Shown here in pieces: positions 12,446 to 52,268 of a stretch of 64,000 bases of DNA. The notes under the pieces are model-generated. The model had not been told where the DNA came from. It saw only the letters and a list, made by a program, of their open reading frames with translations, and searched no databases. Origin of the DNA: Podarcis muralis. Its lineage: Eukaryota. The translations under genes were made by a program, and so were the position numbers. Position 1 is the stretch's first letter, and each line of letters starts with the position of its first letter. The stretch is taken from contig NC_135662.1 of the NCBI RefSeq assembly GCF_964188315.1, forward strand, positions 51,460,001-51,524,000, in the 5' to 3' direction.

Positions 12446-12939
12446 CTATGGCTTTGCCCTCTTTGCAGAGCCCCAGGGGCTTCTTACATACTTGAAGCGA
12501 GATCCCAGTTCAGGAACATAGTCATAACTTTCATCCTGTTCAGAAGAACTTGATCCCAGGGAGCTAAGCGATCCAGCCACTGACCCAGTACCTTCAAAAG
12601 CATATATCTGAAGGGAATCATAAGGGGGAACATCGGGATCAGAGTTGGCTTCTTCTAACTTCATTGTAATGAATTCCCGGAAAACAGCACTCTCGGGGCC
12701 AACCTGCAGAGATTGCCTGTAAAGGCTCTGGATCTGTGTTGTGATATTTCTTCGAGGTTTGTTTTCTCTGAGGACAGTTTGGTTCCTCAGAGCTGAAATA
12801 TCAAAAGCCTCCGTGTCCTGCTCCCCACCTCCTTCGTCGTCATACTTCACAATGTTTTCTCTGAATGCTTCTCCTCCTTTCTTGTGAAATAGAGATTGCT
12901 TTGTCTGCTGCTTCAAGGCCACAATTGCTAGAATAAAAA
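12446..12939 (-). CDS. CDH19: CDH19 last coding exon (cytoplasmic domain), 494 nt to stop
   Basis: TTGGCAG|VFILAIVAL...[16 protein letters not shown] (p120 core)...[28 protein letters not shown]...; TAG at 12448-12446. Confidence 0.95.
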
Positions 12940-12987: not shown

Positions 12988-13026
<39 letters not shown>

Positions 13027-31200: not shown

Positions 31201-34200
31201 CATTGTTATTGGTTTCTAGGGCCCCCACAATTCTTGTTTTCATCACGATGGCACTCGTATGAGGTTTGTGCCCTTATAGAGTGATCAATACACATTCCCT
31301 GCTCATTGTACATCAGCTTTCAATACCATGGGTTATTATGAGATGCTGGTGATGTTTCTGTGGAAGCTAACAGGCATTTGAGAGATCTTATCATGTCCCT
31401 CTTTGCAGACAAGATAAACATGAGGCTGCTAAGTGGTATGTCTTTAATGTACTGCTCTTACTTCTTTCTTTAAAAAGTCTGACCCAGATGTAGTCTGGAT
31501 ACAGTTGGCGAGCCAATAGAAGCTGGAGTACAGGATTAGTACACAGGACATTATATGTTTAAATCAAAATATTTATATACCACGTTTCATTAAAAAAATC
31601 CCAAGGTGGCATGCACCAGGATTAACAAAAGGAGGTAAATAACTTGTATAGAATGATCATAAAAGTGACTGGCTCATCTTAAAAGTTTAAACCACGGAAT
31701 AGTGGACTTTCCCCCCAGGATTCCAGTCAAAATAGAAGGGTTAAACCTCCCCTTTCTATGTACTGTGGTCTCAATCCTGATTCCAATTAAAAAAAACTCT
31801 GACATTCCTGCAAGCCATCCCTTTAACATCCTGCGTAGCTAGTCCTAAGTTTGAGTGAATCATAAGCAGGAGATATACAGAAGATAGGAGGATTCATGTT
31901 AGTGATTAGATTCAACCTCCTCTAGATATCTGGTGAGTAGTCTAGGGTACTCTTGGATTCAGTGACAGTAATTGGAATGGTAGCCGGTGATGGTGGACGT
32001 GAACTATTCTCATCAACTGTATCTGATTAAAATGAGCTATGACATTATATTTCAGTTTCACAGCTGATGAATGTCAACCACAATTTTGAACCTGCACAGT
32101 AATATTGTGCTTGCAGGAGAGAATACGAGAGGAGGGAGGCAGACAGACACACAGAAAGAAAAGGACTACAGCTCTTATTAACAACACAAACAAGCATTAT
32201 GGAAACCTGGCACTGAGAGGACAGGGAATGAAACAGGTAGAAGGTAAGAAGACAATGCAGATCAATTACAGAGTCAGTTGTTTCTGTTTTTGTCTCATTT
32301 CACAGTTTTACCAGTTCCATTTCTTCTTCAAAATTTGCATACCTGCCCCAATATATAAGTTCCAGTTTCAACAGTGGACAATGAAACACCTGTCCAGAGC
32401 AATGACCCATCTAAAGGGATGCCAAGCACTGATGAAAAACCCAGGATCATATGACTGATTTTTTTCCTCATGGTCATCCAAAGAAGCAGTCAACAAACAC
32501 CCACAGTGATAACAAAAGTGAAACAGAAAGCAATGCAGATGAGGAGATGCAACAAGACTAAGGTCAAAGCAAGGCTTCACTCTCCATTTACCTCCTGTGG
32601 TGGACTGGAAAGGAGAAGTACTCCAATGATATGAACCACTAAAATCAGCTGCCACTGAAAGAAATCATTCATCCCAGAGTACCTGTCCAAATAAGAAAAT
32701 CTTACACGATTTCAGGCAGCCAAGAAAGGATGAGCACTGGCAGATCTCAGCAGGGAGGAAAAGAGATCAACAAGACTTTTTCATCTTACCTGTCCAGCAC
32801 CTGCATTCTCACACACATATGTCTCATAGTAATCCGAAAATTCTGGCGCATGTTCGTTAACATCACGAACATGTATATAAACATTCACTTTCGATATTTG
32901 TTTGGGGTTCACTGAAGCAAAGGAAACAAAAGTAAGTATAAATAAAAGGCAAAAATGGCAGCTCATAGTCTATTGTGCGACCCTATAGTATGATATATAA
33001 TTTTGTCATTAAAATGCTTTGTTCAGCTCTAGAAGACGTGACTATTGTAAAAAAAGAGAACACCTCTCCTGTGAGACATACTGTGCCTTTGATTTCAGGA
33101 ACAAATAGTATGACTGTTACATATTATTATATGTCACAATGAAATAATAATAAATATAATAGTCATTTTGCATAGCATTATCCACTGTGCTGATACAATG
33201 TCTTCAATAGGGGTAACTGCTTAGCATTCCATGACTACCTGTGACTGAGTCACATACAGTACAACATTCTAGAGCATGTGACGAGTTCATTTAGGCAAGT
33301 TCCTCCTTTGATCAGCGCAAGCGGCAAATTGCCTATTTGAAAGAGCAATGAAAGAATAAACACCCCAAACAAATATTGCGTGGACAGGCGGAGTCCCCAG
33401 ATCCCGAGTGCCCCCCCCCGTCATGTGGAATAACGACTCTAGACAATGTGCTATGGGATTAAATTGGCCACAACTTTATTAAATTTCAAATGTGGGTAGA
33501 CCTTGGCTCAGGCATTGGGCGTTCTCCCTCCCCAGTCCCCAGCCGGGGACCTAGGGAGCTTCAGGGTTATCCAGTGTGTGTGTGGGGGGATGGGCTGGCT
33601 CTGGAGAACATATGTTCAAGCAGAGACAGCCGCCCCCGTTACGCCGCCGCCGTAGGGGAGAACAATGACGACCTTTCGGCGTACGGTCAAAGCCTCCCTT
33701 CCGAAACCCCCTTTAACAGGGAACCCTGGTATCGTCGCCGCAAAGAGGAAGATGGACTAAAGGATTCCGCCCAAGGCCTGATACCGCCAAAGTTGTGACG
33801 TTTTGCTACGGGAAAGGCGAAACCTGCCAATTCCTTTCCGGCCCTTTAACAGCGACCTTACGTAGCAGCGCCCGCATACCTGTGAAGAAAAGTTAACCTG
33901 CGAAACCTGTGAAGAAAATTTAACCTGCAAAATAAGACATTAACTGAGGGTGGGTAGGGTGGGAGAAGCTCTGGAGCCAAGTGAGGATTACCAGGTAAGA
34001 TCCTCCCTCTATTGTGTGGGCAGGTAATCCCTCCCCCTACCTGGCCTGGTTTCCCTGGCAACGCTTCCCCCAGGTGGGATTGGACAACTCACTGAGGTAG
34101 GCGGTGACCTCCAGGTATCCCACCTGAGGGAAGGCAAAGCCTATGCTGATGGGGCCACTCCAGATCCAGGGCTGCACGCGTCCACGCAAAGGGCGCCCCC

Positions 34201-37200
34201 CGTTTTAAGCGGGGAGCGGTCATTCCCTGATGTGACTTAAGACAAATGTTGTAGGTAAATGAACTGAGTAAGCAATAACTGAGATATGGACAAATGTGAA
34301 AGAAAATAACTGAAAACCAGAACCACTGAAGGAAGGAATTTACTTTCTTACTTTCCTTCTTTCTAGCAATTCTTTTACAGAAGATATGATAATTTTAAAT
34401 GCTTTAAAACAAATGAATCTTTTGCTTAAGACAGGTATGACAGAGTATTGGCAGTCCCACACTTAAATAAGCTTAGTTTTCAAGAAGTACTTGATAAAGC
34501 CATTTTTGTCTTTACTTGTAAAAGTAAATGAAATCTAAAATTCTCTACAATGGCTATCAACAGTTTTATTTATTCATGGGATTTTCTTAGTCTTTGGATA
34601 TTGTTCCATAAGTCAACATATCATTGCTTAGAAAAAGCAGAAAAGGCTAATTTTCCCTTATGTTGAAAAGAGGAAAGGGATTGTGGGAACTGGTTGTAAA
34701 ATTTGGACATATTGACAAGGTCAGTCATGCCAATGGAAATCTGCTATAATGAATAAATGAATAAAATTTATAATGAATAAAATTAAAAGCAAAAATAAAA
34801 CCCATATTTTGAATAAAGGCCTTTGTGACATTTTTTGACAAACAAATAATGCCAAATAGTTCTGTTTTGTTGTTTTGAACAAAATGTTTTAGGCTCTTTT
34901 ATCATAACACCTGCTGTTCCAAAGAGGAATTTTCTTCTTCTCCCCAATTAGCTGTGCCAATGTTTGATAACAACTAACGTGACTTGCTTTTAAGAAATGA
35001 GGGTAGGATTACAGAAATTAATTCAGTATTTTTTGAAAAACCTCTGGAGAACAAAGATGTCAAACTAGATTGCCTATGTTATGTAATGCATTTTTTTTAT
35101 ATTGACCAAATTAATATGGCAACTATCACTTCCCAGCTGAACAGCAAAATAAAAGCTAGCATACAGGTATAGAACTTCTTTCTGGATAGTTTATCTCTAG
35201 ATAGTTTCAGACAACCAGGCTTTTCCCAGTAATCTGTAGCTTTCCTGGTCAGCAAGGGATGAAAATCGTATGCACGCTGCACAACCAACTTTCCTAATAT
35301 CCTAATTCTGCCACAGATACCAGGAAACTGTACTTATTAAAGATGTCTGTAACTAATGGGGCAATCCCGTAGCAAGATCCTCTGGGGTGAGTAGTTTAGC
35401 AAGCAGTGGTTCAGCTACAGTTAAGTCCCCAACCCTGGTTTAGTCAAAGATACACCACTGTAACTTGCTCATTCTATTCAGGACTCAGTAAGTCACCCAA
35501 AAGTGATGTTCCAGGGGCATGGTGGGGTGGGACCAGAAAGGGAGGATTTAGGCTGCAACCTAAGCCCGTTCAGCTCAGTCACAAGACCGAGCAACCCAGC
35601 ACAGAATGCTATCTGGAAGTCTCTCTCCTCTGCTAGTCTTAGGCAGAGCAGCAGCAGCAGCCCCACTACTGAATGGGGTCTGGATCTGGTGTAAATTTAT
35701 GCCAGCTTAATTTACGCTGGCTCACTTTTCTTGTGCATAGGATTGCTCCCTAAATCTATTCTGATTTTCAGTGCCTATAAATCATTGCATACAGCAATCC
35801 GAGATTTTCTAAAATTTGAATTTTGTGAGAATTTGTGATTTCAGAAAAAAGATGAGAGATATGTAGAGACAGATAACAGACTACGGAATACTATTTGGGA
35901 TATTGCACAAAGAAGATCTCTTTATTGTCATTCCGTGTTGTTGTTTTAAAGGAAACAGAACAAAAGTGAAAATGAAGGTTCAAAATTTCACGCAATATGT
36001 TGGAATGTTGCAAGGTGGAAGGGAAAAAATGAGCTATATTATTTTGAGTTAAACTGAACTCAGTTTAAAATCTATTAGGATTCTATTTAAAAAATCTGTA
36101 TAGTTTTTCCATGCTGTAAGTAATTTTTATTTTGGTATAATTTAATTTGTGTGTGCATTATCCTTTATAATGAAAAGCCCACAGCTCATCTTTTTGACAA
36201 GACAATCTCAAGTTATCTGAAATTGTTCCCTTGTGGTTTTCATTTACTCTTTTTATTGCTAGGCACTAAGTTTCTGGCACACTGTTCCAGATTTACATTT
36301 TTGATTTTTTGGAATTACCTCCCTAAGGCAAGGTGACCTGTAAGTGAGAGCACAAACGAGGCAATTTGCATTTGATTTTGAGACAAAACTGACAGGTGAT
36401 ATCTATATAAGGTATGCTTTCCTGATTTAATTGCAACTGTATGGAAGTCTAGCTGATTAAAGCCCTGCTTTCACAATTAATTTGAGACACAGGTTTCTGA
36501 CTGGTGTTAAATTAAACCCTGGCTAATTTCATACCAGTCAAAAAATCTGCTGTGAAATTAACTGGGGTCTAATTTAACATAAGATCTTGTACCAGGAGAG
36601 CAGTTTTATATGCTTCGGTGTAACTTAAAACTGTTTTAGTTTCCATTATTTTCTTTTTTAAAAAAATGGTATAATATTTTATGAGAATCCAAGACTTGGG
36701 AGATCAAACATTATTTGGCTTCCAACTCATCATTTTAGCAATGCTACATACGGTAATGTTAGCTAGCAACGGTAAAATAATGAAAAAGTAGCTTATTTTC
36801 TCAGTTCAGAAAGAAGAGATATACTGAAGATAATTGCAAGGAATTCATGCCATCGCTCAAGCATAGGGTTCCTTAATGTCTTACTCACTTGATTCTGTGG
36901 CTGAGACGGTTATGTTGTGCCAAGCCGCTATCTCTCGGTCCAGAGGTTTGGTTATACTGATTGTTCCATTGTGTGCATTGATGCTGAAAAATCCCTTTAA
37001 ATGCTTGCTGTGGACAATAGAATACCTGCACATCAAAGTAGGGAAGGGGGAGATGGAGACTTTCTTAAGAACTGAACAAAAATGGTACTTCTGAAACAAG
37101 GCTATATAAGCTATTGTCAGTGAAGAAAGGAGAGTGGTGTAGATATGAATATGGATGTGTTCTCCAGCTGCTCAGAAATCATGAAAAATGTACACTGATA

Positions 37201-40200
37201 AACATTTAAAATTCACTGCTACCAAGATCAAAGCGCTTCTTTCTATGAAACTAAATATGCCTCAGACCTATATTAATGTGAACCAAATCTAAAATGCATT
37301 ATTCATTCTCATTGCGCAGGCAGACTCACAGCAGGTGAGTGACTCAATTCAAAAGAAACAGCGAAGTGCCACTTGTAAAAGGAGTAACACTGGCAACTTA
37401 GTTGGGATATAACCGCACATTTATTTCATCATGGTTGGCTTGATGCAGTGTCAAAGAAGCAGAGCAAAGGAGGAAGAGCTGAAAAGAGCCCCCTTGATAG
37501 TATGTATCCCACTTCCATTAAATAAAAAGAATAGGTCAGAAAATGGTGTTGCCAGGAAGTGGGGGGAAAGACCTTTGGGCTTACTTTTCACAAACTGTTT
37601 TGTAAGGCAGAATAAGGTTTTCCTACTTAAAAGACCTCCTTCTTAGTTTCCCTACAGTATTCCAGCACCCCCTCCCCAAAAACAAAAACTGGATATTTTA
37701 TAGAGGGAATTTTTATATATTTTTTAATATATACTTATTCTGTACCCTTGGAAAGGGAGCACTCAAAGATCATTTTTTTAAAAAAATGGCTTACATTAAA
37801 GCAGGCATCACCAAACATGGGGTCATTTGACATTTTGAGAAAATGCTGTTGTTTGCAGAGAAGGCAAAGCGTAACACAAAATGGCTGCCATGGGGACATG
37901 GCATAATGCTTGCCACAACTAAAACAACAGAAAAAATGGAACAAGACCATAAATGGTGTGGGCATGCACCTCAGCAATGAAGAAAAGGCACCTACACCAG
38001 CCACCACAATTCATCTCAGTCACTGAGATAAATTATTGGGACTTCTCTGTTCAGATGACATGTTCATTGGCAGAGAGGCTGGGCCAGTGCAAACAGGAAC
38101 TGAGCAGGAACGGCTAACAATCTCATATGTTGTGGATTTTTGAGGAAATATTTACTGAGATCTTTTGCAGATACTATTGGAAATGCTGACAGGTCCCATG
38201 ATAGGGACCCCTACAATGAGATTTTGCAGAGTGCATGAGATCTCATGAAATTTGGGTGAGATCTTTTCAAAATCAGTGCTGCTGCTGGTGGTGCTTCTCT
38301 GCCAGTGGGGTGGGCAGGGCAGCAGCAGGGCAGCACTTCCCATTTTACCTAAATTGGATGACAAAATGGGATGTGCCACTCCTGATTAAAAGGTAAAGGT
38401 AAAGGTACCCCTGCCCGTACGGGCCAGTCTTGATCACTGCTCTGGCGAGCCAGAGCCGCACACGGAAACGCCGTTTACCTTCCCGCTAGTAAGCGGTCCC
38501 TATTTATCTACTTGCACCCGGGAGTGCTTTCGAACTGCTAGGTTGGCAGGCGCTGGGACCGAACAACGGGAGCGCACCCCACCGCAGGGGATTCGAACCG
38601 CCGACCTTTCGATCGGCAAGCCCTAGACGCTGAGGCTTTTACCCACAGCGCCACCCGCGTCCCCCCACTCCTGATTAGATAACCCATTAAAAGCAGCTAC
38701 TATTGAAAGAAATCATACATCCCAGAATACCTGTCCAAATAAGCAATTCTTATCAGATTTGTGGCAGCCAAGAAAACATGAGAAGTAACTCTGTTTCAAA
38801 ATGCTTGTATTGTTTAATAACCCCATTTTCTTTCCCAGGATTCACTTTACTTCACAAACTATAAAAGCAGTTATATTTATAAATCAGCAGTTCTTTCCAA
38901 ACAGCAAATGTGCAACTAAACACTGAATGTGCAGAGTCTGGATATGCACACAGAGGTCCCCCTATAGCAAGGCTTTGCCATTGTATTTAAGGGAAACAAA
39001 GCTCCATAAATGTACCATTTTAAACACAAACAGGAGAGCCTCAACTGAATTAATGGGGAAGTGCCATACACCTCTCAGACGGAACATACAGGTCTAGATT
39101 TGAGCTGCTGTCTTCAGTGTTATTCAAGAATCTATGACAATCTCAGCTGGAGAAGGATCTCTTGAAGCTGCACCTGATTGAACTGTTGACACTGTCTGGA
39201 TCTCTGGAACTCACAACTCCTACAAATGAATCATTCAAATCCCCTTCATCAATCTCCATCACAAATTCATCTAACGTGAAAATGGGAGGCTCATCAACAT
39301 CCTTCACTCTGATCCTAAGAGAAGTTGTGTCTTCAAATGGCCCATCTTTTAGGAAGCGCTCATCTATGTGCCTGTTGAAACCTTTCACTTTCATATTATA
39401 TATGCTTTGATTCTCATAATCCAATATCTGTATGTAAGAAAAGGAAGGGGGGGGGAGTAGAATAGTTTCCATTCAGCATTAGGAAGCTCATAATAAGTGT
39501 AGAATTAAAGACAATAAACATATTAATGGTTCATCTTTGCCTTACCTCTCTTTGCTTTTACTATTAAGTTTACTCCTTTAGTTTCCTGGTGTTTTTGATG
39601 ATCAATCATTGGGCTGGAGCCTGGCTTTAGGAGTCTGCTCCTTCCCTGAGCTCTTCCTCTTGGCATTTTGCTGTATGCTCCCTCCGTATATGCAGTGTGG
39701 GCTTTGGCTAGGTGCCTTTTAGAAGAGGCTGAGCAGGATTTTTTGGGGGGTGGGGGGTTCCTTCATTGCCCATTAAGGTACCTCCTTATTTGCCTACTCC
39801 ACACTGGGGACAATTTGGCTGGCATTCTGGGGAGTGGCATAGATTAACTGCTCATGGAGCATTGAGCCTGGGCATGTGAGGAAGCTGGGGGAAAAAACCT
39901 TAGGTATATTGAGGCATTACCAGGTTAAGGGCCCACTTTATGGATCCACCTGTGTTTTAGGTGTGGTGGCTTTGGGGAGGTGCCCTGTATGCCTGACATA
40001 CATATTATGGATGGGCACTGGGCAACAGGGCCTGGGTACACATGGGTAGCTCATACTCAAGGCTCACCCAGCAAAAAAAGGCATTGTTTCCTCCTCATCC
40101 TTTGCTGGGGAGCCACAACCTACAGCTGTATCCCATGCCCAAGGGTCTGAAGGGATGCTTCCCTACCATAGACAAAATTATCAGCTGACCACAGTTTCTG

Positions 40201-43200
40201 AATGTGGTTAATTTGGTTTGTTGTTCCTGCAAGGTGTTGCATTAATTAAAATGCCATTGTCCCATGTTTGATCTCATGAATTTGTGTGGGTCTAGGGCCA
40301 TACTTTTCTGCATACAGCCAATCTATCCTGGATCATGCCGGAGTTTGGCATACGTCTGAGAGAAGATTTTCTTCTTCAAAACAGCCCTTTATATTGCATT
40401 GATATTTTATCATGACCAACAACACAAGGCTATAACAAGCAAACGTACTTAATCTTGTCTGTTTCAATGATTTCTGTGGTATTTCTTTGTCAAGTAATGG
40501 CTGACGTCTCACCTTGTTTAATATGACAGTTCCTTCTTGAGTCTCATTGTTAGTAACGATGCGAACAATGTGAGGAGTGTCTCCTTCTATTACATAGTCC
40601 ATGGCAGCATTCTCTCCCAGGTCACTGTCATCTGCCTTGATTTTGCCTAGAATGCTGCCCACGGGTGCTGCCTCAGATGCATACATTTCATAACGCTCTT
40701 GAAGAAACAACCAAATATCAGAGAAAGTTGCCAACACAATCTTGATCACCGACATAACAACTAAATGTAGACCACTTTTTATTCTGAAAATTGCCCAGTT
40801 ACACAAGATGTATGGCTTGGGGGTGGGGGAGCTTATGTCATAAGCTCATTTTCTTTTGTGAAGCTTGGCAGCCTTGACTTGGATCATCCATTCATGAGTT
40901 TCAACATTCATGAGCCAATTCAACATTCCAGTTGTTTATAAGTTCACTTGCTTGCTTGTGTGCAATACAAAAACTCAATTGAACAATGACATATCAATTG
41001 TCCAACAACCAATTTCAAAGAGGGGAAATGAAAAATACAACTAATTGTGACTGAAACATCCAAGACTGACTTCATTTTTAAGGAAGACTGGAAAGATGTA
41101 TGATGCTTTGCAACACAATACCTCAATATATTTCATTAGCTAAGCATCTAGAAATGGTCCCTAAGCAGTTGTGGGTTGTTTCGTATTGAAAGTAATACAT
41201 TCTACATCCTCTAATGATGTGTTCAGTGTAAACACATCATTAGGTCACTTTATGATGCTCATGTCTAGAATATTTTTCCTTGTGCTTTCATTGCACAGTA
41301 GCAACCTAGTACCCACTAAAATTAAAGGTTTCAAACATTCTGCCTTCTGAGGCTCATTCCAGATCACTTTGTCTTTTGAGGAACATGTGGAGAAGGTTTG
41401 GAGGAAATGTCATTACATGTGCACACAATTCACTGTACTGATCAGGACTGCTGGACCTCACCATTGCTCTACTAGAACTGAAAGTGCACCCAAAATTATA
41501 CTCAGCACCACCCTGCACATGAGAAAATTGTTCACAGCATTGTAGGAGAGGAGAGAAAATTGCAGGCTGTCTGTCTTTTAGGGAAACACATTTCCATGAC
41601 TGCTTTTTTTTTAACTGAGGAACACCTGATAAGTTTTTAGAGAATCCAAGTAGTGAAAACCACTACCATAAATTACAGATTTTCTGTTATTAAAAATCTA
41701 AGGTGTACTATGCCTTGCCTGCTAGATTGCACTGAGATGTGTTGGTCCCAAGTTACTCAGTTTATATTTATCACTTAATTAGTTGGTCCTCAGAGGATTT
41801 TTGTCCTTAGCAAAACCTCATTTTATCCTTGTCGGTATAACAACACTAGTTTCAAAAATATAGGCTGCTATCCCCAAGAGAGGTGGAAATTGTATTAGGT
41901 GTTCAACGGAAGAGTTTCTTTCTATTTTAAATATCTGTATAGAAAGTGATAAGGCTGAGACAAAATGGCAGGGAACATGTTTTGTGTGAGTTTTACCTCC
42001 TCCAAAAAGAGATGCTCCCTCTTTCAGCAATGGGAAATACCAATATGGGAAAAAAATATTTGTAGCATGGTTCTCTCTCTAACACCCATTCAAGATAAAA
42101 GCGATGCTCCTGGACCTTATTCTGAATTGCCTTTTTGTGATGCAGTAAAATCTAAGCGGCTCTGTGGTATTTTTACATAATCAAATGTATTAGGTGATCC
42201 CTGTTTGGTTAGAATCATTCAAGGAAGGGGAAGACATAGTGGAGAGGTACATGGCACTAAAGCAGCAGTGAAGAAAAATAATTTTTCAGGATTCTCCATG
42301 TATACTCTAAACATTTTCACAGGGTGACTATTGGAAGAACTGTTTGTTCAAATGAAGCAGCTGCTTGCCTGGTGATGGACATGCAACTAAAGAAGAAACA
42401 GTTGCAGTTTTCTGACTGTGTTTTCTTTACAGGTTGCTCTATGCTTTTATTTTTTATAGCTATTTAAACATAGTGACTACATCTATGTTACCAAGACAAA
42501 ATTGACAGTACAAATTTAAAGTAGTGAGAAAAGACTGAATTTGTAGCAGTAGTAGAGTTCTAGATGCCTCAGTTAAGAATTCACAGAAGTACATTTCTCA
42601 AAGTTCCTTTATCTAAATTATAAACGTTCCAACGAAATGGCTTATGGAGTCTGGACACACTGGGTTTACCTTCCTTTGGCATTAATTATACTATCAATGC
42701 AATGTTTCTTTGAATGGGTTATAAAGAGACAATGACATTTAATCAAGGAACATAATGCAATATAAAAACATTAATTTTTAAGTTTTGTACAAAAGTATTT
42801 CACATATAACATATGTTTTATTTATCAGAATTAGTTGGTCTGAATTTGCTCCCAACATTTAAAAAAAATATATGAACCAAAAGACATTTTACTCACTCTG
42901 CTGAAATCGAGGAGGATTGTCATTAACATCAGAGAGGTTGATAGTTACAGTTGTGGTAGCTGTAGGGACACCTGCTTCACCAACTCTGGCTTGAATGACA
43001 ACAAAGCACTGATCCTGTGTTTCTCTGTCCATTGGGTAAGCCGTTCTTACTACCCCTGCAAAATATACAATATTTACAGCACAGTTAGATGTCAATGAGA
43101 CCTGCAGCCTGGCAAGCATGTACAGCACTGGAATCTTAAAGTTCAAACTATTTTTCTCACACCAACGCATGAGAGTATTTTATCATACCATTGCCCCAGT

Positions 43201-46200
43201 CTAGAAAGGACACTTTGCATGCACAGAGGGTTTCCATGATTGGATAGCCTCTGGCTCTGCCTTTGTATGGACAAAAAGAAAAGGAAGCCTACAGGATGGT
43301 ATTCTGATGGCCCCAGCTGTTTTGAAATCTGAAGGTACTGCTGAATTAGTACTGTGACCTGTAAGGTAGGGCTAAGGAACTTGTGACCCCCCCCCCAAGA
43401 TTATTGAACTACAACTCCCATCATCCCCGAACACATAGACTTGTGTTGATGGGAGCTGGAATCCAATAACATCTGGAGGACCACAAATCCCCCTTCCCTG
43501 TTCTAAGAGCCCAGTTGCCTGTTTGGGAAAGACAGTCACTCTCTACCTCCAGCTGGTGAGAAGTGCAGTCAAAGCAATCTGGGTCAGTATCTGTTGATTT
43601 AGAAGCCGTGCACCACACACAGCTGGGTACATTTTGAAGAGCAATTCATATATGGAAGCTTATGTGGGTTGAAAATGACCACAACTTTACTTGTTACAGC
43701 TGGGATCACTGGGTGGGCTGCTCCTATGGGCCGTGTAAACAAACACACAAAGTCCCAGAATNNNNNNNNNNNNNNNNNNNNNNNNNNNNNNNNNNNNNNN
43801 NNNNNNNNNNNNNNNNNNNNNNNNNNNNNNNNNNNNNNNNNNNNNNNNNNNNNNNNNNNNNNNNNNNNNNNNNNNNNNNNNNNNNNNNNNNNNNNNNNCC
43901 TTCATCTTCATCAATGGAGCATGGGAGAGGGGGCCAGCATGGGGAAAAGGCAGCATCTTCCTGCAGCTCCATTATGTTCATTTAATCTTAGATGAAATCT
44001 GGATCCAACCCAGTTCTTTTAATTTAATTATAATACAGATATAACATCAAAGGGAAATTATTGGTTATACAGGTTTTTCACACCCATGTTGTGCATTACT
44101 GATACTCAAGAGTCTTATATCCATAACCAGCAATACCTGTTGTTGGCTCCACAGAAAAATAGGGTTGTTCAGAAGGGATACTGTAAAGCAGGCGGGCACC
44201 TGTTGGAGCTGTAGCTGTAACCTGAATCACCGAAGTACCTGTGGAAGTGTGGAGTGAAAGGCACAGTTCTTATGGGAGCATTTACTATAGCTAGCCATGT
44301 AAAAAAGTTACTCATTGTTTGTTAATGTTTCTATATGTATATAGACATATAGGCAACATAAAGATACTTTCTTTTCATGATCCTGTTAGGGAAAGTAAGG
44401 GTTAGGGTTAGTTTACATGCTTTATTCAATATATAAATAAATACCAGTGTAGATGAAATCCTCTTTTGTGTGTGACCCTTTATTTACCAAAGTATAGTGG
44501 ATCTCTTTACAGAGACACCCAGCTTTTGGAATTATTCACCTGAAAAGCTACCTGTCTCATTTTTTATGAGATTGCGAAGCCTAGCAGAATCTAAATCTTG
44601 TCCTCCTTTTTACTGAATTTCACTGTGAATGCCTCCCATATCACTGCAAGGACAGCTACTTTTGGATTACATTTTGCCCATGGTAACAATGTGTAAACTA
44701 ACCATTTTATGTATTGCATTTTTAGATTTCTACTATGGCCTTTAGACAAAATGGAAATAAAACTCAACTGACAGCACAATCCTATGCATTTCTGTGGAAT
44801 TTAAGTAATGTAAGTAACAATGTAATCCAGATCCATGATCTGGTTGGATTAGAGTTTGGATCTTGGGCTTTCCTGGTTGAGCCTTGCCTCAGCCAGGGCT
44901 CAGCAGCTTTAAGACTCTCTCAAAATATACATCTCAAAAGCCAGTCTAAAGAGGCACATCCACCAAAAGCTGTGTAATGAAGATGTACCTGTTTGGGAAG
45001 GGAGTTCCACATTATAGGGGCTGCCACAGGAAATGCCCTCCCCAGGGCCACCCCCCCCCCCCAAGCATCTGAGGGTGGTTGGACAGTACTCCCTAAGCCA
45101 GGCTTCTTCGAACTCAGCCCTCCAGATGTTTTTGGCCTACAACTCCCATGATCCCTACCTAGCAAGACCAGTGGTCAGGGATGATGGGTATTGTAGTCTC
45201 AAAACATCTGGAGGGCTGAGTTTGAGGAAGCCTGCCCATGCTGATCTGAACACCAAGGGGTCTGTAGGGAATGATGTGGTCTTCAGCTATTCAGGGCCTG
45301 AGTCATTTAGGGCTTTAAACACTAATTTGAGCACCTTAAATTCAGTCTAGAAATGAACTGGCAACTAGTGCAGTTGTTTTTACTTGGCCATATTTTTAAA
45401 ACAGGAGTATGGGGCCTGTGGCGCTCTAGATATGGCTCAGCTACAACTCCCATCATTCCTGGCCTTTGACTATGCTGGCTGTTGTTGAAGGGAGCTGAAG
45501 TCCAGCAACATATTGAGAGCCACAGTTCCCCCATTCCTGTTTTACACTTTGTTTTCCGCACACATGTGTACTTATGCGAGATGCTCTCTTAATTTTACAC
45601 TGGCTACAGGTTTAAGAGATAATAAAGGACTCCATATTTAAAAAAACCAAAACACAAAAAACCACCAAACCAGGAGCACTGCATCAGTCCTTAATTTAAT
45701 GCCTGTGGTGCGGCTTAAAAGAAATAAACTCAAAAGAAGCAATGCAGGCAAGACACACAACAGGATTCTGATAGCTTTTTATATCCTTGAGGTTGGTAAT
45801 GAGCATTTTCCACTGAATAACAGATAGTGCAATCCATCTAGAGAAGACAATTTTGTCTCTGGTTGGGAGCTGGCTATATCCTAGATCTAAATCTGACACC
45901 ATCCCCACGGGCCTTTCATAAGATTATACCCATGAAGGAAATATTCGTCAGAGCTTCTCATTTTATAATGCAGTGTTTATGTCTAACTCATTTCTTTCCT
46001 AACTCCTAAATACAAATACAAATCGACCTCTCTTGGGGCGTGCAAGACCTCCAGCCACTTTCTATCATAGAATCACATTATCACATCTTATCCCAAGACA
46101 TTCCACTACAACGGCATGTTTCTCTGATAAATTAGTCAGCAGCACCCTCAGGACTTTTAGATGCCTATATAAAGCTGTAACATTATCTGTAAATATGTTG

Positions 46201-49200
46201 ATAGGGAATCTGGCTGTTTTCATGGCATCAAAAGAAATGTCCCAAACTAATGGCTTGTGTGTTGTATCTCACCTGCAAACTTATTTGTATACTATTACTT
46301 AAGAAAGCAGCACAGAGTATTACATTTATTTGCTTGGAAGCTTCTTTGGGACCACATCATTTAAGTCAATTATGTCTACCCTGTGGGCCTTCAGAGGTTG
46401 TTGGACTACAACTTTCATCATCACTGACCAATGGCCATGATAGTTGGGGCTGATGGGAGTCCAATAACTTCAGGAAGGCTGCAGTTTCCCCATCCCTAGT
46501 ATATTTTGGCTGTGACTTGGTTTAAGTAAAAAGGAAGTCACTACTAAAAAGATAATCCTTAGGTAACACCCACTACTATAATCTTATTATTGTGTGGCTT
46601 CAATCATGTGATTTTTTTGAATGGCCCATGAGGCACTGAATAGCTCATGAGGCTAGACATATGGCACATAAACTGGATTGCTACATACATATGTTTATAT
46701 GATCCTGAGGTAATACGAGAAGAACAACTCTGAAATCTGCATTACAATAACCAGATGGATATTCAGCTTTTTGCAGACTTATAAGACCATTCAGGAAAAT
46801 GCTAGAAATGTGGCAACCTAATAATTTCAAAAAGTTGACAAAGATGAATCAGTTGTGCCATGGAATTTGTTCCTTCAGTAGCTTCCCCATATTACATTTA
46901 ATAGTTTCCAAATACTATAGGACCTCAAGATTGTGTACTCAAAAATGATTTCAACTAATTAAAAATGATTTCACGTGTGACTATTAGGCTACAGTGTTTA
47001 AACTGAAATGTTACTCTCACAAGTACAACAACTTGTCAGAGTTGATGAAGACGAGAACCATGGAAGCAATGAATGGAATAAGAATGCAATAATAATACAA
47101 TACAGTGGTACCTCGGGTTAAGTACTTAATTCGTTCCGGAGGTCTGTTCTTAACCTGAAATTGTTCTTAACCTGAAGAACCACTTTAGCTAACGGGGCCT
47201 CCTGCTGCCGCTGCGCCGCTGGAGCACGATTTGTGTTCTCATCCTGAAGCAAAGTTCTTAACCTAAAGCACTATTTCCGGGTTAGCGGAGTCTGTAACCT
47301 GAAGAGTATGTAACCTGAAGCGTATGTAACCTGAAGCCTATGTAACCTGAGGTACCACTATATGTCCTGAATTTGCTACTAGACAGCGGTATAAATAATA
47401 ATACCATGGAAATTGCAGAAAAACTATATGGATAAAGTTTTAAATCATATCTCAAACCCACTGAAATATAAAGTATGACAACTGCACTCAAATCTTGCTC
47501 ATTTTTATAAATGTATTGTGTCTATAGACATTTAAACTATATGATTTACACTCATTGAAAGTACCAACTAGCAGGGGGTGGGGACAGAGATCATAGCGTT
47601 GTATTTGCAGAAGAGTCTACAGTGGTACCTCGGTTTTCGAAAGTCTCTGCTGATGAACATTTCGGTTTTCGAACACCATAAACCTGGAAGTAAATGCCTC
47701 GGTTTTCGAACACACCTCGGAAATCGAACACGCCACGCAGCTTCTACTGAGTGCAAGATCCTGAGGCCTAGCTGTCGGCTATTGATTTTTTGGTTTTCAA
47801 ATGTTTTAGAACTCAAACTGTCTTCTGGAATGGATTATGTTCAAAAACTAAGGTATCACTGTATTTCCTGTTACACTTTAATTTAGTATAACACTTGTAT
47901 TTAAAACCTGAAGAAAATGTAAATGCGGGGAAGTAAGAAAGTATAGTGGCAAAGTAAGAAAGTGTATTAAATAATAAATTAATGTGCATTCATGTTAATA
48001 CAGGTATTGATTCTTGAAATCTCACTTAGAGCTAAATATTCTGCTGAAGAAACTATATAATTTGAAGAGCCCTGGAGAGACTGTGTGAATGTGAGATAGC
48101 AACTGAATGCTAGGAAGGAAGCATTTAAAGAAGAAGTTAAAACTTAATTTAAGCAGTTAAACCAGATTTAAATTGGTATATCTCCTATCCTTTTGCAGAA
48201 CCCCCAAAAAGAAGGATGTGATCTAAACAAGCTACAATTTAGATCTCAGGAAGCAAGCTAGTCCAAAAGAGATGTTCAGATGGAGAAAACAGAAAAATAA
48301 AACCAAATCAGAGATTAAAGACTCATACAGACAATGTGTTTATTGTGCATTCATACTGATTTGCTTACTCAAGGGTTATATAGTGTCCACTCTTTTTGAG
48401 CATTTGTTCTGATTTGGTTCTGGGATGCTTATGTGGCAAAGAGCCTTTTCTGCAGTGGCTCCCCATTTGTGGAATGCTCTTCTGGCATTTTCATTATATA
48501 TTGTTTCTCTATAACCTTGCCTTTGGTTGATAAAACATTGTATGGCCTTTTAAATATGTTTGTGGGAGGCGGGTATTTGGTTTTTTGTTTTGTTTTGTTT
48601 TCTTTATTGCGTGTTCTGTGTTCTCATTTGGTATTTTTATGTAACTTTGCCCAGCCTTTTGCTGCAATCTATGGGCCACAGCATCACTGGGCAAAGGCAT
48701 CCCATGATTATTGGGCATGGAACAAGGTTTATAGGAATGAGAGGGATGTGATGATTAGAAATGCTGGTTTAGAGAAACCCCATTGGTTTGCACATATTTA
48801 AAGTCCTGAATCTTTTCAAATTTTGATTCTTTAGGAAAATGAAATAATCTAGCTGCAACAGCCTACTTCATACACACAAACACATAGAATAAATGCAAGG
48901 TCAAAGTACAACACACAGTACCTCTTACAGACATTTCAGGAACAGTGGCTTCATAGGGTTCATTCAAGAAATGTGGTCCATTATCAGCCAGGGAATTGTC
49001 TTGCTTATCTACATCAGATTTCAGCTGCGAGAATAATGAGTAACAAGCTGATTTCAAGATAGGATTCAAACAAACAAACCTTATCAAATTTAATGTCAAG
49101 TCGGTTTCCCCCCAATAAGGTCAGAAATCCCTTTGATGTATTGATTTATACCAAATTGAATGAGATTGTAGTATGTCATTCTGATTGCAAAGCAAATGGA

Positions 49201-52200
49201 GTCAATTTATTTTCGTAATTAGCAGAATTTTCTCCTTGTAATAGAAACAAACAGTTGCGGAATTTCACGAATGCCCCATGATTCATCAGTTCAGATATAA
49301 AAGCTGCCCAATATCTGGAAACAACTTTCTGGAAACAACTAAAAGCATTTTTGATCTGACAGACTTTAACAGCTGGATAAATGGGTCCTTGCCATGAATG
49401 TCTATTTTGTATGATTTTAGTTTTGTTTTAAACATATTTGCTGTTTTGGTTGTCTTTATTGTAAATCATCTTGAAATGCTTGTTTGGAGTGTGAATAATT
49501 AATTGATTGATTGATTGATAATTCTTGCAAAGACTAAATAACAAGTATTTGGATCTGGTATCCATCATTTTCTATATTAGCGTGGTGAAATCTTCTCCTT
49601 AGTATGGCATCAGTGAAAAAATGCAAGTTCTTCAGATATGACAAATTTAAATGATATGAGGTGCTAATCAAAATTCAAATATTTATCAAACCATCTTGAT
49701 ATATTAAACTCCATTTCCCAAAGCTGAGAAACACCAGCCATCTTGATTAATAATCAATCAGTCTTCCCAGGGAATTCTAGGAACTGTAAGAGGAAAAGTG
49801 GTCTCCTAACAACTCTCAGCACCGTTAGCAAACTACAGTTCCCATGAATCTTTGGAGGAAGCCATCTCTGTTTAAAGTGCTATAATACTGCTTTAAATGC
49901 ATAGTGCACATGAGGCCTCAATAAGGCTTTTTAAGGCTTATATGTTTAAGGAGAAACTTCAGAAGCCGTTTCTAAATGCATTGATGACAAAAAGGAGGGG
50001 CAAAGGTACCCAGAAAATGCTTCCTATAAACAAATAGAGGCCCTCTGCATCACATTACATTCTGCAAATTAAATCCATATTTGCTTTTGGTGTTGTTGTT
50101 TTTTAAAAAAGCAAACTTTCTGAAAGCTGATCACATTTTTGTGACCTTTCTGTTAAAAGAAAAGTGACCCATATTTGCAGATTCACAAAATATAAAGGGA
50201 TTGTCTTGTTGTATCCTTTTGAAATGAGACATCATACTTCCAGAGTTTTTACTTTGAAAGGCTGTAAAAAGTAATTAATGAATTTTGAGCACTTCACCCT
50301 TTGGGCCCAATTAAATTTTAGTGCTAGTTAATTAGTGGTTAAACTTTTTTTTGCCATTCATTCAGCTCAAAAGTTGCCTTACAGGAAAAGGATGCAAGAT
50401 GGGAGATTAAAAATGGCTTTAGCATTGTGTGTTTTTTTATTCTCTTGTTTTGATTTGGTGTTGTTTTTTTTAAGTAACTAAATAACAGCAATAAAGAAGA
50501 AGGGGGAAGAATCATTAAGAAAATTACTGGGCATCGTATGCATTTTCAAACAGGGTGGAAAATAATTGCTTATTGTGCCCAAGTCACGTTAACGTAATGA
50601 ACTGTGTCGGTTCCTGGTGCTTTCTTACTGGTAAAAAGGATTTAGTATTAATCTGCTTCATTAAAAATTAATGAGGGGTAAATCAAATGCCACTTAACGT
50701 AACAGAATATCAATCTAAATAGTGTTGGTAAACTGCATTGCTGCTCAGTGTGTCTGTTCTGATGCAATGCCAAAAAAAGGGGGGGGGAGAGAAAAAGCCT
50801 AAGCAAGTTGCCAGATGTTGATAAATGAATCCTTTCTTTCTTTTCGGAAGATGGAAGGGAATTTCAAAACACTTTTGTCAATACAGCATGATACTATTTT
50901 TTAATTGCACAGTTCCTTTTCCTGTGCTGTAGCCCAGATAAAAGTCCAGAAATACGTACATACCAATCTTCAAGTTAAACTACTATGATTGGCTACCTCA
51001 GCCCATAGGGAATTCGATTCTGAGTTTGTAAGTTCCTTCAAGGAGCCAGGGAAATGCTGAGAAGTGGCCTAAACCAAATATGGTTTTAAGTTTATGATAG
51101 CAACTTTAGTGTCAAACGAGTACTTGCGGTTGAAGGACAGGCTGGATGATGAAAAGTGGTGGGAGGTGCCAACCCAAGAACCCCTTAGAGATGACATAGA
51201 GGAAGAAGACTTGGACCAGGACAGTGGTGGTGGGACACTGAGGAAGAAAGCTGGGAAGTGGTAGAAGCAGGAGGCTTGAGTGAACATAGAGAGTCAGAAG
51301 AAGGAAGCTGTCCACAGACAAGGTGGGATGCCAAGTATGTCAGTTTGAGTGCAGACTCTGAAAGAGAGCAGCCAGAAGCTGCCTCAGTTTCATATCAGTA
51401 GGCAAGTCCTTCTACAGTGGCCTCTCCTCCTCCACTGACACCAAGATCATGAAGAGCCTTGCACATTGCTGAGCAACAGGCCAGACAGGCCCAGAGGAGG
51501 GGTCACTCCTCCTCACCATAGTTTATGTCTGCTTGGGAGGAGTCCAGAGGCAAAGGGCTAAAGAGGGAAGGAGGGGACAGATGCCAGCCACAACAACGTC
51601 TTCAACTGGGGCAGTTGAGCCTGAGTGAACTCTGCTGTGTTTTCCTTTTCTGAATGAAAAAGCTGACTGCACATTGAGTCTTGAGTCATCATTCTGACCT
51701 GTGGATGATCCTGCCTGTCTGACAGTCCTAACACAGAATCTTACATGGCTCTCTGACCAAGTCCTCCAGTCCCAAGTAAAACCTTGACAGGAGATCTTTC
51801 AGATTCTCTGATGCTAAAGCATCTTTGAAAACATGGAGCAGATCGTTAAACAGTGCAAGAAGGGCAAAGATGGTGCTTATTCTTCAGGTATTGCTGTATA
51901 TTGCTGCACATCTCAGAAGAAAGGTTTCAAGGAGACTGTTCTTTCACAAGGCCAGATTGAGGGAAGATTTAGAAAAGCAAGCAGGTATTAATCAACACCT
52001 CAACGAGATGTTAAACCTCCCACAGAAAGAGTTACTGTACCTGGCCCGATTTCAAAGGATGTGTTAACATCAGTTCTTCCTGTACAACCAGCAGGTTCCG
52101 AACCCCGCCATGTTTCACTCTCTGACGTCTCACAAATGCTTGCTCCAAGTCATCGGGGTTACACTTGTGCGTACAGGGAAAACAGGGCCCAAGCTGAGCC

Positions 52201-52238
52201 AGGGTCAGTGCGAGTGAGAGCCATTTGTAACAATGCAT
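12446..52238 (-). CDS. CDH19: Cadherin-19-like type II cadherin; 11 coding exons, 2124 nt, 707 aa; lacks most of EC1
   Basis: Join(52238-52041, 49024-48922, 44238-44137, 43055-42897, 40697-40513, 39427-39174, 37025-36889, 32911-32790, 20118-20001, 14370-14119, 12939-12446). All junctions are AG/GT with matching phases. The sum is 2124 nt = 708 codons including TAG. The tail [20 protein letters not shown] and the MHCY start match recalled CDH19 rather than CDH7/CDH20. Confidence 0.92.
12991..13024. repeat. (CA)17 microsatellite about 50 nt upstream of the last CDH19 acceptor
   Basis: Read directly. Confidence 0.97.
13736..13968. mobile_element. Tc1/mariner-type MITE (TTCGAAAACC subfamily)
   Basis: TA|CAGTGGTACCTCGG...CTGAGGTACCACTG|TA. 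Confidence 0.82.
14119..14370 (-). CDS. CDH19: CDH19 coding exon 10 (EC5 end and transmembrane helix), 252 nt
   Basis: TTTTTTAAAG|NTARII...[22 protein letters not shown]...[13 protein letters not shown]|GTAAGA. Confidence 0.93.
16335..16566 (+). mobile_element. RTE-BovB LINE 3' end
   Basis: Translates as [30 protein letters not shown]; ends GAAGAGTCGGACACGACTAAATGACTAAACAACAA. Confidence 0.88.
17150..17570 (+). mobile_element. Degenerate CR1 LINE 3' fragment
   Basis: AGAACTCAGGGCCACCCATTGAAGCTGAATGTTGGAAGATTCAAGACAGACAAAAGAAAG resembles the end of CR1 ORF2, followed by 3' UTR-like sequence. Confidence 0.7.
19388..19638 (-). mobile_element. tRNA-derived SINE (Squam3-like)
   Basis: The minus strand reads GAGCCAGTGTGGTGTAGTGGTTAAGAGC (A box)...ATATCAAATCCAAAC...(TTC)n tail. 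Confidence 0.78.
20001..20118 (-). CDS. CDH19: CDH19 coding exon 9 (EC5), 118 nt; absent from the ORF track
   Basis: GCTTTTAG|[39 protein letters not shown]|GTAGGT; canonical length. Confidence 0.92.
26724..27602. mobile_element. Unclassified ATIR-plus-hairpin element, copy B
   Basis: Imperfect hairpin at 26730-26754. TTTGTGTGCCC (26758-26768) pairs with GGGCACACAAA (27592-27602). CCAAT-like, TATA-like and shared family motifs lie inside. Confidence 0.7.
28199..28267. repeat. Compound (TG)n(AG)n microsatellite
   Basis: Read directly. Confidence 0.97.
29872..30319. mobile_element. Unclassified ATIR-plus-hairpin element, copy C (short, internally deleted)
   Basis: Hairpin GGATCCTC-ctaaca-GAGGGTCC at 29872-29893. 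GTTGTGCT (29896-29903) pairs with AGCACAAC (30311-30318). AATAAAGTTGTGGCC at 30215-30229. The 3' part closely resembles copy A. Confidence 0.7.
32790..32911 (-). CDS. CDH19: CDH19 coding exon 8 (EC4/EC5), 122 nt
   Basis: TTGCTTCAG|[40 protein letters not shown]|GTAAGA. Confidence 0.93.
33376..34224. mobile_element. Unclassified ATIR-plus-hairpin element, copy D
   Basis: TTGCGTGGAC (33376-33385) pairs with GTCCACGCAA (34180-34189). Hairpin CGCCCCCCG-ttttaag-CGGGGAGCG at 34194-34218, then GTCATT as in copy B. Contains a 27-nt tandem duplication at 33878-33931. Confidence 0.72.
36889..37025 (-). CDS. CDH19: CDH19 coding exon 7 (EC4), 137 nt
   Basis: GTGCAG|[45 protein letters not shown]|GTGAGT. 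Confidence 0.93.
38389..38664 (-). mobile_element. Sauria SINE (second subtype) with about 90-nt internal deletion and 13-bp TSD
   Basis: TSD CCACTCCTGATTA at 38376-38388 and 38665-38677. The deletion is relative to the copy at 53532-53895. Confidence 0.92.
39174..39427 (-). CDS. CDH19: CDH19 coding exon 6 (EC3/EC4), 254 nt
   Basis: TACAG|ILDYENQ...GPFEDTT...DVDEPP...[11 protein letters not shown](R)|GTGCAG; canonical length. Confidence 0.93.
40513..40697 (-). CDS. CDH19: CDH19 coding exon 5 (EC3), 185 nt
   Basis: TTCTTCAAG|[34 protein letters not shown]...[10 protein letters not shown]|GTGAGA; canonical length. Confidence 0.92.
42897..43055 (-). CDS. CDH19: CDH19 coding exon 4 (EC2), 159 nt (canonical 165)
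   Basis: TTTGCAG|[52 protein letters not shown]|GTGAGT. Confidence 0.93.
43762..43898. other. Assembly gap, 137 N, inside a CDH19 intron
   Basis: Run of N between the exons at 44137-44238 and 42897-43055. Confidence 1.
44137..44238 (-). CDS. CDH19: CDH19 coding exon 3 (EC2), 102 nt (canonical 120); absent from the ORF track
   Basis: CTTCCACAG|(G)[33 protein letters not shown](G)|GTATTG; phase 1 to 1. Confidence 0.9.
47103..47360. mobile_element. Tc1/mariner-type MITE (TTAACCTGA-rich subfamily)
   Basis: TA|CAGTGGTACCTCGG...GAGGTACCACTA|TA. Confidence 0.82.
47620..47861. mobile_element. Tc1/mariner-type MITE (TTCGAAAACC subfamily)
   Basis: TA|CAGTGGTACCTCGG...AAGGTATCACTG|TA; the interior is the inverse of 13736-13968. 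Confidence 0.82.
48922..49024 (-). CDS. CDH19: CDH19 coding exon 2, shortened to 103 nt (canonical about 295 nt)
   Basis: TTCTCGCAG|[35 protein letters not shown]|GTACTG; phase 0 to 1. Confidence 0.9.
51110..51724. mobile_element. Degenerate solo-LTR-like sequence in the intron after the first coding exon
   Basis: Purine-rich, GC-elevated block bounded by TGTC...GACA. No TSD found, so boundaries are approximate. Confidence 0.4.
52041..52238 (-). CDS. CDH19: CDH19 first coding exon (signal peptide, prodomain, EC1 strand A), 198 coding nt
   Basis: [21 protein letters not shown]...[30 protein letters not shown]. Donor CAG|GTACAG at 52040. Acceptor TTTTTGTCTTCCCACAG places the exon start at 52268. 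Confidence 0.9.
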
Positions 52239-52253
52239 GCTGAAATTTCCTTT

Positions 52254-52268
52254 TCAATCAATATGCAT
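52254..52268 (-). promoter_or_regulatory. Four-codon uORF (ATG CAT ATT GAT TGA) in frame with the CDH19 ATG, starting 30 nt upstream
   Basis: Begins at the first base after the predicted acceptor. The stop lies 15 nt before the main ATG. Confidence 0.55.

Follow-up and report, generated by a model that had tools for sequence, protein, structure and literature searches.

Type II cadherins adhere by exchanging the A strands of their first extracellular cadherin (EC) domains, EC1, such that Trp2 and Trp4 dock in a pocket of the partner molecule; the substitution W4A eliminates both homophilic and heterophilic binding and an X-dimer intermediate is formed at the EC1-EC2 junction (PMC6029887). CDH19 is the sole type II member for which neither a stable adhesive fragment could be produced nor a specificity group assigned (PMC6029887) and it is presented, in a further study, as a cadherin of the neural crest and of Schwann-cell precursors (PMC13026002). 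The CDH19 gene considered here is that of the lizard Podarcis muralis. It lies on the minus strand of a 64,000-nucleotide (nt) stretch of contig NC_135662.1 (assembly GCF_964188315.1, positions 51,460,001 to 51,524,000), hereafter termed the window, and it lacks most of the codons for EC1.

T-cadherin (CDH13) and VE-cadherin (CDH5) are members of the classical family that operate outside the standard adhesive mode. They carry a complete EC1 and bind via EC1 or via an EC1-EC2 X-dimer, T-cadherin without a cytoplasmic tail, whereas in squamate CDH19 it is EC1 itself, together with the EC1-EC2 junction, that has been lost. The divergence of VE-cadherin has been noted earlier (PMC6029887). A further resemblance is to engineered dominant-negative, W2A or W4A cadherins, which retain the catenin-binding tail but have a disabled strand-swap element; the use of an ectodomain-truncated N-cadherin, dn-N-cadherin, has been described (PMC5430493). 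In contrast to these constructs, squamate CDH19 is natural, fixed in a whole vertebrate order and under selection, and it retains four constrained EC domains that would be rigidified by calcium.

The EC1 deletion in CDH19 and its spread among squamates

To model the gene, tblastn was run with the most similar deposited protein as query and the exon boundaries were then adjusted to splice sites, which yielded 11 coding exons with 707 codons, a stop codon and no internal stops (Table 1). All the CDH19 coding exons of the window have AG acceptors and GT donors. Exon 2 is preceded on the minus strand by ...tcgcag, starts with CTGAAATCT and ends with GTAAGAG ahead of the intronic gtactg. The original prediction, made by a model from the letters of the window, had described a normally spliced exon of 103 nt in place of one of about 295 nt, with 192 nt, or 64 codons, of EC1 missing and the other ten exons open over 707 codons, and each of these readings was borne out, the missing codons by alignment both to the exon of archelosaurs and to cadherin-8.

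Table 1. Coding exons of CDH19 and the assembly gap within the gene (positions in the window; lengths after "vs" are those of canonical CDH19)
Feature	Position	Strand	Length (nt)	Content
Coding exon 1	52041-52238	-	198	start codon, signal peptide, former prodomain, former EC1 A strand
Coding exon 2	48922-49024	-	103 vs 295	EC1 stub, degenerate linker LADNGPHF, EC2 start
Coding exon 3	44137-44238	-	102 vs 120	six-codon in-frame deletion takes the EC2 DxDD...N calcium ligands
Coding exon 4	42897-43055	-	159 vs 165	two-codon deletion takes DM of the late EC2 calcium ligand; EC2-EC3 linker DVNDNPPRF intact
Coding exon 5	40513-40697	-	185	first part of EC3
Coding exon 6	39174-39427	-	254	EC3 into EC4
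Coding exon 7	36889-37025	-	137	EC4
Coding exon 8	32790-32911	-	122	EC4 into EC5
Coding exon 9	20001-20118	-	118	EC5
Coding exon 10	14119-14370	-	252	EC5 end, membrane span start
Coding exon 11	12446-12939	-	494 incl. stop	rest of membrane span, cytoplasmic domain, p120 core, beta-catenin region
Run of 137 N	43762-43898		137	intron 3, which separates coding exons 3 and 4; outside the coding sequence

Exon lengths were compared after eight deposited proteins, from Emydura, Alligator, Struthio, Zootoca, Elgaria, Python, Anolis and Gekko, had each been threaded with exact agreement onto the corresponding genomic locus. Exons 2, 3 and 4 measure 295, 120 and 165 nt in Emydura, Alligator and Struthio, whereas they measure 103, 102 and 159 nt in the window, Zootoca, Elgaria and Python, 103, 108 and 159 nt in Anolis and 115, 102 and 165 nt in Gekko. 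Exons 6 to 10 are equal in length in nearly all the species, the exceptions being exon 10 of Gekko (240 nt), exon 7 of Anolis (125 nt) and exon 6, which has either 254 or 257 nt, and in the window these five exons agree with canonical vertebrate CDH19 (human, chicken, turtle) in length and all the phases match.

The 192 nt missing from exon 2 extend from immediately after the motif ...DxS to immediately before the (D)xND linker, and the segment aligns to residues preceding position 98 of mature cadherin-8 (PDB 2a62), that is, to EC1. The same gap, with the EC1 core absent, occurs in all 13 squamate CDH19 proteins aligned, which cover Lacertidae, Amphisbaenia, Anguidae, Varanidae, Agamidae, Dactyloidae, pythons, elapids and viperids, Cordylidae, Scincidae and three geckos; the exon 2 junction itself is covered by 11 of these 13 models, that of Tiliqua starting downstream of the junction and that of Naja having a misannotated N-terminus. 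Turtles, crocodilians, birds, mammals and a toad all retain the EC1 core. The six-codon loss of DDPxYG from EC2 is likewise shared by the 13 squamate species examined, and geckos keep four extra residues (...QEYI/LTDN...) relative to other squamates. Since all sampled squamates, from geckos to snakes, are devoid of the EC1 core, its loss predates crown Squamata. The age of crown Squamata is about 200 million years in published time trees. What had been left open as a peculiarity of one genome, or a young pseudogene, thus turned out to be ancient, present in all the squamates sampled and under purifying selection.

A search for the missing EC1 segment elsewhere in the window revealed no remnant, the only tblastn matches being to the EC3 and EC4 repeats of the gene itself, and a hidden or split exon carrying the segment within the window was therefore ruled out.

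The assignment to CDH19 is supported at several levels. The product of the window gene is 97% identical to cadherin-19 of Zootoca vivipara, which also has 707 amino acids (aa); the last exon, searched against 1.8 billion representative proteins, led to cadherin-19 of Tiliqua scincoides (80% identity), and a search with the full-length protein yielded best matches that are all named cadherin-19, from squamates, turtles, crocodilians, birds and mammals. In a maximum-likelihood (ML) tree the squamate proteins form a clade with 100/100 support inside CDH19, as sister to turtle, crocodilian and bird, while CDH20, CDH7 and CDH5 fall outside the CDH19 clade, and the branching within squamates follows the species tree, with geckos first, then scincoids, then lacertoids and toxicoferans. 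The tree placement, combined with the presence of 11 coding exons in the same phases as those of archelosaurs, indicates that the window gene is a one-to-one CDH19 ortholog and not a truncated duplicate. A squamate paralog with a full EC1 was also considered and rejected, there being no full-length squamate CDH19 (about 778 aa) among the matches and a single copy in the tree.

Measured against the general features of type II cadherins, the product departs at its N-terminal end and conforms at its C-terminal end. In place of five EC repeats there are EC2 to EC5 only, 64 of the approximately 100 EC1 codons being gone; four exons match the cadherin repeat. A single membrane span is followed by p120 and beta-catenin regions, the last exon matching the cadherin cytoplasmic family (Pfam PF01049, E = 1e-21) with the predicted binding motifs conserved. 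Relative to turtle and bird CDH19, EC2 to EC5, the transmembrane (TM) region and the cytoplasmic domain are 65-70% identical, with the same calcium sites 2 to 4 and the same catenin motifs, whereas canonical CDH19 has 64 EC1 codons, Trp2, Trp4, a furin site and a complete EC1-EC2 calcium site that are missing here.

Expression, selective constraint and decay of EC1-dependent features

Ribonucleic acid (RNA) contigs of 1499, 242 and 3381 nt, from three different studies and mapped on positions 44050-49100, splice position 48922 to position 44238, which is the junction of exons 2 and 3 that the original prediction had anticipated; it was listed as 44233 to 48917 with a "cut +5" and with CT..AC ends, equivalent to GT..AG on the minus strand. 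Two of these contigs, X15 (1499 nt) and X19 (3381 nt), leave the genome sequence at positions 49024-49027, corresponding to the exon 2 acceptor, and in each of them exon 2 is preceded by 425 nt, fitting the 198 nt of coding sequence in exon 1 together with a 5' untranslated region (UTR). Downstream of exon 3, X19 has a further 2751 nt, fitting the remaining 1721 nt of coding sequence and a 3' UTR. X19 is a full-length messenger RNA (mRNA) consistent with the 11-exon model, judged as such because its upstream and downstream lengths both fit that model. At least eight RNA runs from the organism itself contained 0.91-0.97 of the sampled words of the last exon, which was also partly present in three related organisms.

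In all RNA runs, two short stretches of intron 2 (47092-47429 and 45064-45232) showed summed word depths of up to approximately 230,000, and variant letters and loose ends were frequent in them. This behaviour resembles that of copies of an interspersed repeat that is both abundant and transcribed, and not that of CDH19 transcript.

Selection was estimated as omega, the ratio of nonsynonymous to synonymous rates (dN/dS), by ML under the GY94 model with F3x4 codon frequencies on fixed trees of six squamate and three archelosaur taxa. For the whole gene, omega was 0.315 in squamates (likelihood-ratio test (LRT) statistic against 1 of 298, p about 1e-66) and 0.295 in archelosaurs, such that purifying selection on squamate CDH19 is as strong as it is in species with a full EC1. 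The regional values for squamates and archelosaurs, respectively, were 0.54 (p = 0.001 against 1) and 0.47 for the N-terminal tail, 0.26 and 0.13 for EC2, 0.38 and 0.38 for EC3, 0.57 and 0.39 for EC4, 0.27 and 0.47 for EC5, 0.18 and 0.12 for the TM region, and 0.215 and 0.19 for the cytoplasmic domain. In every squamate region omega was significantly below 1, the outcome that the original prediction had named, for EC2 to EC5 and the tail, as support for function. The 64 codons that squamates have lost show an omega of 0.14 in archelosaurs, where they rank, together with EC2 and the TM region, among the most constrained parts of the gene. Pairwise estimates are of the same order: the Nei-Gojobori dN/dS for the whole gene between the window and Zootoca was 0.19 (22.5 nonsynonymous and 33.5 synonymous differences), and values ranged from 0.23 to 0.33 for deeper squamate pairs and from 0.22 to 0.31 among turtle, alligator and ostrich. 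Of the residues that seven other amniotes share without exception, squamates retain 71-83% in EC2 to EC5 and the tail, against 33% (6 of 18) in the N-terminal part.

The decay has been selective with respect to domain. Trp4 has been lost in all squamates examined, and Trp2 in lacertoids and toxicoferans but not in geckos or in a cordylid; the sequence in the window is GGVRN where archelosaurs have GWVW, and strands B to G, which form the acceptor pocket, are deleted. The RxKR furin site at the end of the prodomain, RVKH in the window in place of RVKR, has been lost in all squamates examined except the cordylid. At the EC1-EC2 calcium site the linker DxNDN is now LADNG in the window, the DxDD...N ligands of EC2 have disappeared in all squamates through the six-codon deletion, and the late EC2 Asp has been removed by the two-codon deletion in lacertoids and toxicoferans only. 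Thus, this site is dismantled, whereas the xE, LDRE, DxNDNxPxF-type and DxD motifs of the EC2-3, EC3-4 and EC4-5 linkers are conserved, as are the p120 core and the beta-catenin region DSLQxYAFEGxGSxAGSLSSL. The pattern fits an early loss of EC1, after which features serving EC1 alone would have become neutral and the rest would have stayed under selection.

The cordylid concerned is Hemicordylus capensis, whose CDH19-like protein (P0340/P0282) retains both RVKR and Trp2 (RVKRGWMRS) and has no 16-residue exon 2 stub, the sequence passing directly from ...THLLTFGQ to PRFLDGPYE....

AlphaFold2, applied to residues 1-300 of the Zootoca protein with a 30-sequence alignment, predicts a disordered N-terminal tail ahead of folded EC2 and EC3. 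The model has a signal-peptide helix at residues 7-15; predicted confidence scores (pLDDT) stay under 50 over residues 15-79 and are about 90 for the two cadherin domains formed by residues 80-300. The best structural match among type II cadherins is EC1-3 of cadherin-8 (2a62, E = 3e-56) and, because this alignment begins only at residue 98, with the linker DINDNAPEF, nothing equivalent to EC1 is left. Given the loss of the tryptophans, of the pocket and of the EC1-EC2 junction, canonical trans adhesion by squamate CDH19 would be excluded on established structure-function data.

Explanations for a CDH19 without EC1

The overall best explanation, to which we attach a probability of about 0.82, is an old in-frame loss of EC1 from an otherwise intact, transcribed and constrained CDH19 gene that would encode a four-domain, catenin-coupled membrane protein. 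In the simplest history, a deletion of 180 nt on the squamate stem would have removed the EC1 core in frame, from late in strand B to strand G, and a further 12 nt would have been lost in non-gekkotans to give the 192 nt missing from the window. The features specific to EC1 would then have decayed patchwise, the EC1-EC2 calcium site being dismantled partly by additional in-frame deletions, while the signal peptide, EC2 to EC5 with their three calcium linkers, the membrane span and the p120 and beta-catenin sites would have been held by purifying selection. The product would most likely be a membrane-anchored, catenin-coupled and rigid four-domain cadherin, preceded by a tail of some 55 disordered N-terminal residues, that could form neither the Trp2/Trp4 strand-swap trans dimer nor the EC1-EC2 X-dimer. 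This largely agrees with the anchored four-domain cadherin with an EC1 stub that had been proposed originally, of which the structure, splicing and transcription have been supported and the translation and insertion into the membrane, in the expected topology, are presumed.

Several points weigh against this explanation or soften it. Support for a protein product is at the level of DNA and RNA. The junction between exons 1 and 2 is supported indirectly, by the exit of the contigs at the acceptor, by how long these contigs are and by the RefSeq models available for orthologs; moreover, the one raw-read run was of low depth, with a single junction read. The omega estimates derive from few taxa (six and three) with partly saturated dS values of 0.4-1.3, and the approximately twofold weaker constraint on squamate than on archelosaur EC2, together with the value of 0.57 for EC4, suggests that the ectodomain may partly drift. 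CDH19 of the tuatara was absent from the results of two protein searches, so the age of the loss is bounded only by crown Squamata.

Any retained function would have to rest on catenin coupling and on EC2 to EC5, which might make lateral or heterophilic contacts or act as a spacer. The role favoured here is that of a catenin-coupled protein that acts, independently of EC1, as a receptor or in lateral interactions, because the constraint on EC2 to EC5 and the invariance of the catenin motifs suggest a membrane protein that uses both its ectodomain and its tail. Tentatively, and with somewhat less than an even chance of being correct, squamate CDH19 may function in the neural-crest and Schwann-cell lineage without EC1 trans adhesion, via EC2 to EC5 and catenin coupling, or as an antagonist of other type II cadherins.

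The invariance of the intracellular motifs is also what would be expected of a natural dominant-negative protein, or catenin sink, that has no ectodomain function of its own and competes for p120 and beta-catenin, thereby lowering adhesion by co-expressed classical cadherins. The original prediction had drawn this analogy, to engineered dominant-negative cadherins. The canonical adhesive apparatus is gone, hardly any residue varies in the p120 core and the beta-catenin region, and the lowest squamate omega values are those of the cytoplasmic domain and the TM region. However, a pure sink would have no need of a folded, rigid ectodomain, whereas EC2 to EC5 are all under significant purifying selection, the three remaining calcium linkers have been kept for about 200 million years and, for the gene as a whole, omega matches the value in species whose EC1 is complete. 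We consider a pure sink unlikely.

Slightly more doubtful is the retention of adhesion through a new interface, with homophilic or heterophilic binding via EC2 or the N-terminal tail. The tail is about 67% identical between a lacertid and Python and, like EC2, it is under some constraint, but it is predicted to be disordered, has kept only six of the 18 N-terminal positions that are invariant in other amniotes and shows no gain of new conserved hydrophobic residues, and the cordylid model dispenses with the exon 2 stub altogether.

A young or decaying unitary pseudogene with an open frame by chance might account for the several deletions and for the loss of Trp2, Trp4, RxKR and calcium site 1, but it is highly improbable, given that all the deletions are in frame, that neither a stop nor a frameshift occurs in the 707 codons of the window or in eight coding sequences rebuilt from other genomes, that omega lies so far below 1 and that spliced mRNA was found in three studies. 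Equally improbable is an assembly collapse or misassembly that removed 192 nt from exon 2, for which nothing speaks beyond the N run that lies at a distance of 5 kb within a different intron, since 14 DNA-like runs from five studies contain 0.75-1.00 of the sampled words from positions 48700-49300, the RNA contigs carry the 103-nt exon joined to exon 3 and the same 103-nt exon is present in four other squamate assemblies.

Deposited models and implications for squamate CDH19

Squamate proteins have been deposited at the National Center for Biotechnology Information (NCBI) as "cadherin-19" or "cadherin-19-like" with no comment on a loss of EC1. Several of the deposited N-termini are wrong or missing, as for Rhineura floridana (P0160), Tiliqua (P0001), Naja (P0259/P0281) and Crotalus horridus (P0269), and among the faulty models some begin at the internal Met of PEMS and some have an unrelated first exon. 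The Rhineura model, with 756 aa, is about 49 residues longer than the others and has a gene range of 171 kb. These faults probably arise because exons 1 and 2 are no longer cadherin-like. Automated annotation names the squamate proteins cadherin-19 without any flag, with the models of Tiliqua, Crotalus and Naja starting wrongly.

At the 5' end of the gene an upstream ATG (atgcatattgattga) is located within 52239-52268, directly after an AG and 30 nt ahead of the start codon; in the window it is followed by a stop after four codons, and the Pogona and Paroedura models begin at the equivalent Met (MHIDCEENFS.. and MLIDCKGNFS.., respectively). At the 3' end, the last approximately 15 codons (12446-12500), after ...LGSRFK, differ between squamates in sequence as well as in length, with last exons of 485 to 530 nt; Anolis has a C-terminal extension of 13 residues and the archelosaur C-terminus is WGPxFKxLAxMY-like. 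A (GT)n microsatellite occupies positions 12990-13040, and the acceptor of the last exon follows about 60 nt downstream of it.

Searches of the literature on CDH19 or cadherin-19 combined with squamates, lizard, Anolis, reptiles, snakes or EC1 yielded no description of such a protein, in agreement with the original prediction, and a squamate CDH19 without EC1 appears to be unreported in the literature searched. Classical cadherins are defined by strand-swap adhesion through EC1, and here EC1 was lost in the ancestor of about 11,000 species with expression and constraint retained. Squamate CDH19 would thereby demonstrate a selected cadherin function that is independent of the canonical adhesive interface. 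Because the binding properties of CDH19 have never been determined, the squamate protein may be useful as a natural construct with which to tell apart what cadherins do with and without adhesion as neural crest and glia develop and, if the explanation favoured here is true, squamates would represent a natural "EC1 knock-out" of a classical cadherin that has lasted for 200 million years.

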